From contig NW_020846421.1 in NCBI RefSeq assembly GCF_003704095.1, positions 186,001 through 250,000 on the forward strand: DNA of 64,000 nucleotides, given 5' to 3'. The translations under genes and the position numbers were made by a program. The notes below the pieces were generated by a model. That model had not been told where the DNA came from. It made no database searches and saw only the letters and a list, made by a program, of their open reading frames with translations. This DNA is from Pocillopora damicornis (taxonomy: Eukaryota). Positions 34,354 to 37,346 of the stretch are shown here, one piece after another (positions within the stretch are counted from its first letter, which is position 1; each line of letters begins with the position of its first letter).

Positions 34354-34732
34354 GTGAGTCTGATGTGAGTCAAATGCTTTGTCCCTCATCAATGAGGAAC
34401 TATTGACGCTGATCTTACCTTACGAATCCAGGCTTGTCGCCAACAGATCGGCAGCTTTTGAAATAGCTTGGAGTTCTCGCTCCGTCTAAGTAGTTGTTTT
34501 ATTGTTTTGTATTGTCTTCTTTAACGCTTATAACGCAAAGTCAATTGATGTTGTCATACAGCGCTACGTGGTTTTCGTTGCTTACATAGCATTCCCTCTT
34601 TCCTTCTAGTACATTGATGAATCCAAGGTTATGAAAACTGCATATTTCTTTATTTTCTTAATTAGAGTGATCAGCGACACCGTTCCTCCTGAGAACATTC
34701 TCGTGCCTTAGTTAAAGCTTCTCGAAAGAGAG

Positions 34733-37346
34733 ATGAGATCCCACTTGTATCCGCGTGTTTGTCTCTGGCCGAAAGTGCCTACTGTCCCACAAGTATATTT
34801 TACTCTGGCGATTATTTCGTTTCTTTGTGGAAACCTTCTGGCCTGTGGTCCTGGGCCAACCGGAAGAAATACTCGTTCCAGGACTCCGATGAAGTTTCGA
34901 CAAAGAATCCCTGATGTGGAGGAGACCTCAATACAAGCCAGTGGAGAATATGTTGGTCGAGTAAAGAGAAGTGAATTGGAGGAAAATTTTAACCCAGATA
35001 TCGTTTTCAAAAACGACGAAAAAAATGAAGATGATAGAAGAATGACCAAGGTAACCGCTATTGCAATTTTGGATTATTTGAAAATTATGGACTAAATCCT
35101 TAAGTGAAATCAATCAAACGTTATGGTTTCAGTACCCATACATGGATTACTTGCTTCATTTACGGCCATACATGGACAAATTCGCCATATTCAGGATGCT
35201 ATTCTCATGCAATTCTAACTGTCAAATGCTAAATGCTAACGATAATTAGCATTAACCGGTCGAAAGTAATCATCTTTATTGCGTCGATCCGAGAGTGTCG
35301 ATGATGTGTTATTGGTCGCAAATTTTGCACGGGTTAGAAGTCCAAAATTTAAGGGTTACGTCACAAGGTATCTGGAACAATTCTGCTCGCCATCTTATGA
35401 AATCCGAGTTAATCGTAATGTATTTGTCCATCCAAGGTTCATCAAGGTTTTATTCGATTTTAAAGGGAAATTGTACCAGAAAAATTATCATTTCTCAAAG
35501 CTTTTCAAATAAAATTTTACTAAACTCCCAGACATAAGACTACCGATGATGCGTGGATTGAGTTCACGAATCAAGTTTCCTAACCGAGAGTTCTGAAGTG
35601 CTGATGTTAAGCTTTGTTTTGTTAAGTAGTGGTTATTGCTTTGCTATTCATGTGTTTTTTCAAAGAACGGTATTTCCTGTCCTATTAGAGCTTACCTGCT
35701 TAGTGGAGCATTTCAGATAAGCAAAGCTTTTTCTGGGCAGTGCATGTCGATAGAATTACAGCTTATTTTTAATAAAGAGCATAATAAACAATTGCAAGCG
35801 ATAATTCGATTATCAACCAAGGACACTGCAATAAGAACATAATTGACTCATCAAAATAATGGTTGGGGACTGCAAGAAAGCGCACGGGCTGGCTTCAGTG
35901 CTGTTATCTTAGAATCTAAAGAGCGCCTGGGGGAAATATTTGCGGTGTCCTTGTATAGCGTCGACGACATGCATGTTCATCGATAGCACCGTAGGCTTGC
36001 TATAAGTCATGCATAGATGTCAATTTAACTATGATAGCTTATACCCTTAACACGCTTTGCTTGTTGTTTACTGTTACTTAGAATTGCCAAGATAAACTCG
36101 CCATTTTAGCATCTGCCGTGAAAACAAAATGGGGAGTAAGACTCCGAGTTATCGATGCTTACGATGTAGATAGCGGCAGAAAAAGGCACCATGGTAAGCA
36201 CTCTCTACACCATGAAGGACGAGCTGTCGACATAGCTACGGAGGACCTTGATAAGAATAAATACCCACAGTTAGGAAGGATGGCCAATGAGGCTGGATTT
36301 GATTGGGTTTATTATGCAACTAGAGGCTACATTCACGCATCTGTTAAAACTGGTAGGTAAAGTATACATACGATACTGACTCGCATAGCTGTATGAGCTT
36401 TTTTCGGTTTAACTCAGATCCTGTAGGCCTATTGCTTCCCTTCCCAGATAGGTTAGTTGCTGGTCTTAGTTTTTTATGGACGTGGCATTTATTCATTTGA
36501 GGCCAAATACCTGTCATATTCGTTATGGTATACAAGAAGTAAGTTAAGTGCCAAAATACAAATATCAATAAAGTATGGTTAGGCTTTGAAACTTGAAAAG
36601 TGTTATTCAAAGGCAAGCGGTTATTTGTTTCAAAGTTATTTGAAAGAGAATTTGAAAAATGAATTACGTCATTCTGATTGACTGATTTAATGCTCTCTTT
36701 TTTAAAAGAAGATGCTGAACAAGAAAGGCTGAGTTACAACTGCTTTCCTGAAACAGCTTCTGTTCACCTCGAAGGAGGACGTACAAAGACTATGAAGGAG
36801 CTTAGAATTGGAGACAAAGTTGCGGCCATGGATACAAGTGGTCGCATAGTTTATAGCAAAGTGGTGACATTTCTAGACATCAAACCCAACACTTCTGGTG
36901 AATATATATCCATCCAGACGAGAAACCCTGCGGCTGAAGTGACAATTACGGAATCGCATTTGATCTATCAGCTAAACAAACATTCGCCGCTGGAGTCGGT
37001 GCGTTTTGCACGGGACTTAAGAGTCGGAGACTTTGTTTATATTCGAAACGGTGCTGGTTTGGAGAAATTCACAGCTGGACGCGTGAATGGAGTCAAACGG
37101 AGCACAGCGAAGGGGGCATACGCACCACTCACGGAAACTGGAAACATCGTAGTTGATAACGTCCTCTGCTCGTGTTATGCCGTGATTTCCAGTCATGAAT
37201 TAGCTCATTGGAGTTTCGCCCCATTGAGGTTTGCAGATTGGCTGTTCCCGGGCATCACTGCTCACAGTAGCTCAGGTATGCATTGGTATGCAAGAATCCT
37301 TCATAAAATTTACACAAGTTGGTATGACATTACCTCGGGAATCTAG
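34733..37346 (+). CDS. hh: Hedgehog precursor (signal peptide, Hedge signalling domain, Hint + sterol-recognition region), about 408 aa
   Basis: Exons 34733-35050, 36082-36352, 36709-37346(TAG). Intron positions/phases (after RMTK, phase 0; after SVKT, phase 1) match bilaterian hedgehogs. LLA|CGPG palmitoylation start at 34844; [34 protein letters not shown]. Hint domain: CF at 36741, FLD, TITESH (TxxH), [21 protein letters not shown]; SRR motif MHWYA. Confidence 0.97.

Follow-up and report, generated by a model that had tools for sequence, protein, structure and literature searches.

A hedgehog gene of the coral Pocillopora damicornis with asparagine in place of glycine before the autoprocessing cysteine

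Results

A hedgehog gene with an Asn-Cys junction

The window analysed here is a stretch of 64,000 nucleotides from the stony coral Pocillopora damicornis (NCBI RefSeq assembly GCF_003704095.1, contig NW_020846421.1, positions 186,001 to 250,000 of the forward strand), and all positions given below are counted from its first letter. The plus strand of the window carries a true hedgehog gene with three coding exons, which is intact, spliced and expressed. The encoded precursor has the features of a protein composed of a Hedge and a Hog part, namely matches to HH_signal, a signal peptide followed by CGPG, a Hint domain with the catalytic cysteine (Cys1), Asp46, a TxxH motif and a second cysteine, and a sterol-recognition region (SRR). 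The Hedge domain is referred to as HhN, and the Hint domain together with the SRR as HhC. At the boundary between the two, the Gly-Cys-Phe autoprocessing motif with glycine at position -1 is replaced by Asn-Cys-Phe. The junction is located at 36732-36749, where the codons AGT TAC AAC TGC TTT CCT give S-Y-N/C-F-P (here and below, a slash marks the cleavage site or a splice joint), and the sequence, the frame translation and RNA contigs agree on this reading. The codon for Asn(-1), AAC, occupies 36738-36740 and the Cys1 codon, TGC, 36741-36743, both within the third coding exon. The frame around the junction reads ERLSYN/CFPETASV, with the Asn at position 207 in the longer isoform.

The initial annotation of the window had described this junction and held that it is not a one-base error, and both the codons and the RNA from four studies bear this out. 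Logan contigs from four RNA-seq runs, belonging to four studies, contain the joints 35050/36082 and 36352/36712, and a minor form with the joint 36352/36709 is present in one run (X15). No letter differs within 36732-36749 in the contigs of the four RNA runs, which, as assembled contigs, demonstrate presence and splicing but not rare variants. A search for Gly at -1 in transcripts, which had been proposed along with the annotation, thus returned the Asn codon in all four runs. In addition, 100% of the sampled words were present in fourteen DNA runs, several of which may be the source sample. A sequencing error or a polymorphism at the Asn codon was considered and rejected, as another letter was seen in none of the RNA runs. 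Alternative splicing that would place a Gly before the Cys was likewise rejected, because neither the stronger-looking donor at 36356/36357 nor the AG at 36732-36733 keeps the frame. That an assembly or sequencing error, a pseudogene or a wrong exon model could account for the Asn has a negligible chance, given that the same letters and splice joints are found in four RNA studies and the same letters in many DNA runs, that orthologs of four named species agree at the junction, and that the frames are open and the ratios of nonsynonymous to synonymous substitutions (dN/dS) low. The junction is genuine and transcribed, and an artefact is excluded.

The sole difference in exon 3 among the RNA contigs is 36859 A>G, which was seen in two studies (X17, X18) and changes Lys40 of HhC to Arg. 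An Arg at HhC position 40 is also present in Stylophora and Orbicella.

Catalytic residues and gene structure

Apart from the -1 position, the Hint/SRR machinery had been described as intact, with Cys1, the Asp of FLD, TESH, the Cys of LCSCYA and HWYA all present, and the translation as well as a structure alignment agree with this. When exon 3 was aligned to human SHH (7e2i), Drosophila Hh (6td6) and the Hh-C17 crystal structure (1at0), Cys1, the FLD/FMD Asp, the TxxH His, the SCY Cys and the HWY of the SRR were all in register. The FLD motif at 36870-36878 contains Asp46 of HhC, which is the general base for the sterol attack in Drosophila and vertebrate HhC (PMC13738340), and TESH at 36948-36959 is the TxxH motif, whose role is described in PMC4695875. 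The cysteine of SCY within CSCYA (37167-37181) is HhC residue 145 and corresponds in the alignment to the second conserved cysteine (C143 of Drosophila), which PMC12054796 names as forming a branched intermediate. The core of the SRR, SFAPLRF ... HWYA, spans 37212-37292, with HWYA at 37281-37292; it aligns to the human and fly SRR helices and is kept in five coral genera. Thioester formation does not depend on Asp46 and the SRR, but sterol transfer does (PMC4695875; PMC13738340). The coral HhC ends in SGI, not in HN.

The first coding exon (34665-35050) starts at a splice acceptor at 34665, has its ATG at 34733 and a coding part at 34733-35050, and ends at the donor AAG/GTAACC after 35050. It is covered by RNA contigs of four runs and matches Pfam HH_signal with 8.3e-16. 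Its product begins with a signal peptide, called from a hydrophobic stretch read directly in the sequence, followed by CGPG at residue 38 (Cys38 codon at 34844), where HhN starts. Upstream of 34665, the RNA contigs of all four runs carry a common unaligned sequence that ends at 34665, and this shared loose end indicates that at least one untranslated 5' exon lies further upstream. The second coding exon (36082-36352) has RNA joints on both sides and encodes the C-terminal half of the Hedge domain (HH_signal, 9.2e-32), including zinc-site motifs such as IHASVK; it ends in phase 1 (ACT G/GTAGGT). Jointly, the HH_signal matches of exons 1 and 2 span profile positions 1-161. Intron 2 (36353-36711) has a tandem NAGNAG acceptor, AAAAG/AAG/AT, at 36705-36713. 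The RNA contigs skip 359 nucleotides in four runs and 356 in X15 only, corresponding to a major acceptor after 36711 and a minor one after 36708, the latter inserting one extra Glu into the linker, nine residues ahead of the cleavage site. The third coding exon (36712-37346), which lies in an open reading stretch from 36678 to 37346, encodes an acidic linker and the whole HhC (Hint and SRR, 201 aa; Pfam Hint, 1.7e-60) and ends with the stop codon TAG at 37344-37346; the 3' untranslated region extends beyond 37700. The exons were searched separately, and full-length public orthologs (P0001 and others) were used in place of a joined three-exon protein.

The residue at -1 varies among cnidarian orthologs

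Orthologs were collected in two stages. Exon 3 was scanned with HMMER against 1.84 billion representatives, and the full-length match P0001 then served as the query of a word search; cluster look-ups supplied the names. The HhC encoded in the window matches that of Pocillopora damicornis XP_027051206 at every residue, and those of P. meandrina and P. verrucosa are near-identical to it. RefSeq labels the protein of Pocillopora and Stylophora as 'sonic hedgehog protein-like' and gives two isoforms, X1 with 408 aa and X2 with 407 aa, in agreement with the two NAGNAG forms; the gene is thus in the public record already, with an automatic annotation. Cnidarians have two hedgehog genes, and the window gene is orthologous to the one represented in Nematostella by XP_001636412.

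All 25 cluster members of Pocillopora (three species) and Stylophora that cover the site read LSYN/CFPE (14 of 14 in the Pocillopora cluster and 11 of 11 in the Stylophora cluster), with AAC as the -1 codon in both genera. By contrast, the cnidarian orthologs outside the Pocilloporidae carry other residues. A Ser is found in Orbicella (GMS/CF, codon AGC), Oculina (SMS/CF) and four Porites species (EGS/CF, codon AGT), whereas Gly is present in four Acropora species (KAG/CF, codon GGA), two Montipora species (KLG/CF), Actinostola (RSG/CF) and Nematostella XP_001636412 (NTG/CF). P0006, a coral-like gene from a metagenome with 13 members, has Tyr (GNY/CF, codon TAC), and further coral sequences have either Gly or Ser. 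The sequences share the orthogroup, the style of the linker and the CFPE start of HhC, and HhC identity among stony corals is 67-92%. The linker before HhC is acidic and fast-evolving in cnidarians.

The Pocilloporidae form a supported clade in the HhC tree, and their nearest non-pocilloporid relative, P0182 (80% identity), has Ser at -1. Elsewhere in the tree, P0185, a lineage with Gly, falls together with Orbicella and P0175, which both have Ser (moderate support, 91/83). The deep branches of this tree are long and without settled resolution or bootstraps, and named taxa were used for reading the changes instead. The -1 residue is labile in this orthogroup (Gly, Ser, Asn, Tyr), with several changes among stony corals. 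The initial annotation had asked whether Asn(-1) is conserved in a clade: it is fixed in the Pocilloporidae, but the other orthologs have Gly, Ser or Tyr. Asn(-1) would have arisen in the ancestor of the Pocilloporidae, most simply by the path GGN > AGY > AAC, in which each step is one transition. The annotation had stressed that AAC is at least two substitutions away from any Gly codon; this argument dissolves, since the Ser codons AGC and AGT of Orbicella and Porites are one-step intermediates and thus remove the puzzle. The variability of -1 in close orthologs is also what the annotation itself had named as speaking against its proposal that Asn marks a distinct mode of lipidation, and that proposal is not supported.

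HhC is unbroken in Pocillopora, Stylophora, Orbicella, Porites and Acropora, and Cys1, FLD, TxSH, LCSCYA, SFAPLRF and HWYA are unchanged in these genera. Pairwise dN/dS values for HhC range from 0.09 to 0.24, and comparisons with and without the Asn lineage show no visible difference. Purifying selection acts on HhC whether a lineage carries Gly, Ser or Asn.

Glycine at -1 in other hedgehog and Hog proteins

For bilaterian hedgehogs, the statement that the residue before Cys1 is essentially invariant Gly was confirmed in our sampling, with Gly in 96 of 96 bilaterian Hh clusters. In the literature, GCF is described as highly conserved (PMC9695228) and Gly(-1)-Cys(1) as a conserved motif (PMC13738340). 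Among the top 150 matches, 23 Hedge-bearing representatives cover the junction, and in six of these the -1 residue is not Gly. The six include the other Nematostella hedgehog, ABX89897/A7RY14 (GS/CF), Trichuris suis P0143 (His) and Romanomermis culicivorax P0074 (Arg). The latter two are true Hedge and Hog proteins of early-branching (enoplean) nematodes, and the Gly rule thus fails within the Bilateria too. The coral protein has its full domain architecture and the lack of Gly at -1 in common with these nematode hedgehogs, but the residues differ and the lineages are unrelated. The 'invariant GCF' rule is looser than reviews state, and the motif is typical of the family rather than strictly defining.

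Of the Hint/Hog representatives with a covered junction, 127 in all, 40 also have a residue other than Gly at -1, and in three of these an Asn precedes the Cys. In Hog proteins and inteins, as in the window gene, the Hint fold begins at Cys1 and almost any residue can precede it; unlike the Hog proteins, the window gene has a true Hedge ligand domain. A second hedgehog paralog is encoded in the same genome on the minus strand (G000:C2038:86179-87890; L002, L006, L008). It is complete, has the canonical junction WGG/CFSS and groups with Nematostella ABX89897 and with P0018. The Hedge and Hint architecture of the window gene is shared with the second coral paralog and with Nematostella ABX89897/A7RY14, while the -1 position differs within this second group as well, with GG/CF in the coral, GS/CF in Nematostella and AE/CF in P0018.

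Compared with bilaterian hedgehogs (Drosophila Hh and vertebrate Shh, Ihh and Dhh), the coral gene has in common the signal peptide and CGPG, the His/Asp/His zinc site of the Hedge domain, the Hint domain with Cys1, Asp46, TxxH and the second Cys, the SRR with HWYA, and three coding exons with a phase 1 linker intron. It differs by Asn for Gly at -1 and Tyr for Gly at -2, and by the acidic linker, which replaces the conserved ENSVAAKSGG type. A further difference from Shh lies in exon 2 at 36320-36325, where the coral protein reads YYAT, with Ala at the glutamate position of the Shh motif YYES. Coral orthologs with a visible exon 2 end also have Ala or Ser at this glutamate position, and the His/Asp/His zinc ligand motifs are kept.

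Discussion

The coral junction is a real and clean exception to the textbook motif, and the comparative evidence points to tolerance of a different -1 residue rather than to new chemistry. We propose that the precursor is probably processed by ordinary thioester formation and sterol transfer, with Asn as a tolerated, lineage-specific substitution. In this reading, Cys1 would form the Asn-Cys thioester by an N-S acyl shift, which would then be displaced by a sterol presented by Asp46 and the SRR. The product would be HhN with a C-terminal Asn sterol ester. The Asn may alter the rates or the share of hydrolysis, without this being a new mode of processing. The sequence, splicing and expression of the gene, the distribution of its orthologs, the conservation of the catalytic residues and the purifying selection are observed; the chemistry and the product are what we infer from them. 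A labile -1 residue stands in front of a conserved and constrained HhC, and the ordinary mechanism therefore appears most likely. Similarly, the retention of Asp46 and the SRR within a constrained HhC argues that sterol transfer has been retained. By analogy, Asn may be tolerated here as varied -1 residues are in Hog proteins other than hedgehogs. In Drosophila and vertebrates, HhN is a bystander of the reaction, and unrelated polypeptides can replace it (PMC13738340; bioRxiv 2023.12.19.572427).

Several points weigh against this proposal. The retention of Gly in all sampled bilaterian clusters implies that its replacement has a cost, at least in those HhC backgrounds, and the Gly spacer has always been kept in engineered HhC fusions. 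Biochemical data on a hedgehog with any non-Gly residue at -1 were not found in the literature searched. For the SRR, the dN/dS between Pocillopora and Stylophora is 0.56, a value that comes from only 51 codons with few changes. In addition, cyclisation of an activated C-terminal Asn can outpace the attack by outside nucleophiles, as seen in MccB (PMC11118369), and given this precedent, the Asn may not be neutral.

A similar cyclisation can be envisaged for the coral precursor. The side-chain amide of the Asn would attack its own thioester carbonyl, resulting in a sterol-free HhN with a C-terminal aminosuccinimide, which would later become Asn or isoAsn, in competition with sterol transfer. 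In MccB, a C-terminal Asn activated as acyl-AMP is trapped by its own carboxamide as a succinimide, at a pace that outside nucleophiles cannot match (PMC11118369), and by analogy such a route is chemically plausible. The pocilloporids would then have one ligand that is lipid-free, wholly or in part, next to the canonically cholesteroylated paralog. The fixation of Asn across two genera is consistent with this, the GG/CF paralog in the same genome would allow a division of labour, and sterol-free forms of Hh have been reported from flies and mammals (PMC3595218). Nevertheless, we consider a competing cyclisation unlikely, and to the same degree the lipid-free ligand that would follow from it. 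Ser, Gly or Tyr are found at -1 in sister lineages, and nothing therefore selects for Asn as such. Furthermore, Asp46 and the SRR, which are needed only for sterol transfer, are conserved and constrained in the Asn lineage, and the Asn is located outside the Hint fold, without an intein-style catalytic setting. The Asn that cyclises in inteins closes the Hint fold as its final residue, and a penultimate His as well as block F/G residues promote succinimide formation. The coral Asn, on the other hand, stands before Cys1 on the N-extein side, lies outside the fold and is preceded by a Tyr, so that the analogy to Asn-Cys junctions of inteins drawn in the initial annotation is a loose one. One might go further and speculate that the Asn(-1) thioester goes largely to succinimide, yielding a sterol-free hedgehog, while the GG/CF paralog is cholesteroylated, which would split signalling into a lipid-free long-range and a lipid-anchored short-range ligand; this extension of the analogy seems to us distinctly doubtful.

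Alternatively, Asn(-1) might slow or weaken thioester formation or the sterol attack, leaving much of the precursor uncleaved or hydrolysed, in which case the output of the gene would be tuned and not the chemistry of its ligand. Changes in the C-terminal peptide of Shh cut autoprocessing to about half even when the Gly is kept (PMC7835520), and the invariance of Gly in the sampled bilaterians is in line with such an effect. This has only a slim chance in our view, as the gene is well expressed and constrained and many natural Hog proteins presumably work from non-Gly junctions. Direct work on -1 mutagenesis of HhC, or on the effect of Asn(-1) on thioester formation by inteins, was not found in the literature searched. 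Corals are sterol auxotrophs, and one might also speculate that the -1 residue adapts the reaction to another sterol, for instance one derived from the dinoflagellate symbiont. A 2026 paper from the Callahan laboratory suggested that auxotrophy could broaden the substrate tolerance of Drosophila HhC (PMC13738340). However, sterol recognition takes place in the SRR and at the Hint-SRR interface, not at -1 (PMC7906309), and among symbiotic corals the -1 residue can be Gly (Acropora), Ser (Porites, Orbicella) or Asn, indicating that it does not track symbiosis; we regard such an adaptation as very improbable.

Reviews and enzymology papers list Gly(-1)-Cys(1) among the conserved features of hedgehog cholesterolysis. 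In the literature searched, which did not include Matus et al. 2008 on the Nematostella hedgehogs, we found no remark on the non-Gly junctions of cnidarian and enoplean nematode hedgehogs. True hedgehog precursors thus occur naturally with Asn, Ser, Tyr, Glu, His or Arg at -1, with the enzyme domain still under constraint. With such a natural series, biochemists can ask what the side chain at -1 does to the formation of the thioester, to the attack by the sterol and to hydrolysis. If the coral precursor is processed normally, the GCF rule would be a bilaterian habit and not a chemical need. If instead the split between a succinimide-ended and a cholesteroylated ligand were true, the cnidarian series of Gly, Ser, Asn, Tyr and Glu would act as a natural dial on hedgehog lipidation.

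Other Hint and Hedge loci in the genome

Besides the window gene and its paralog, three further loci of the same genome gave matches. Hedge-domain matches without a nearby Hint were found at G000:C3799:255698-257449 (L009, L011). Two loci are Hint/Hog genes in which a Hedge domain was not detected, one at G000:C3536:275155-276006 (L004, L005) and the other at G000:C1462:933251-933862 (L003), where the junction reads RRL/CFPA, with a Leu before Cys1.

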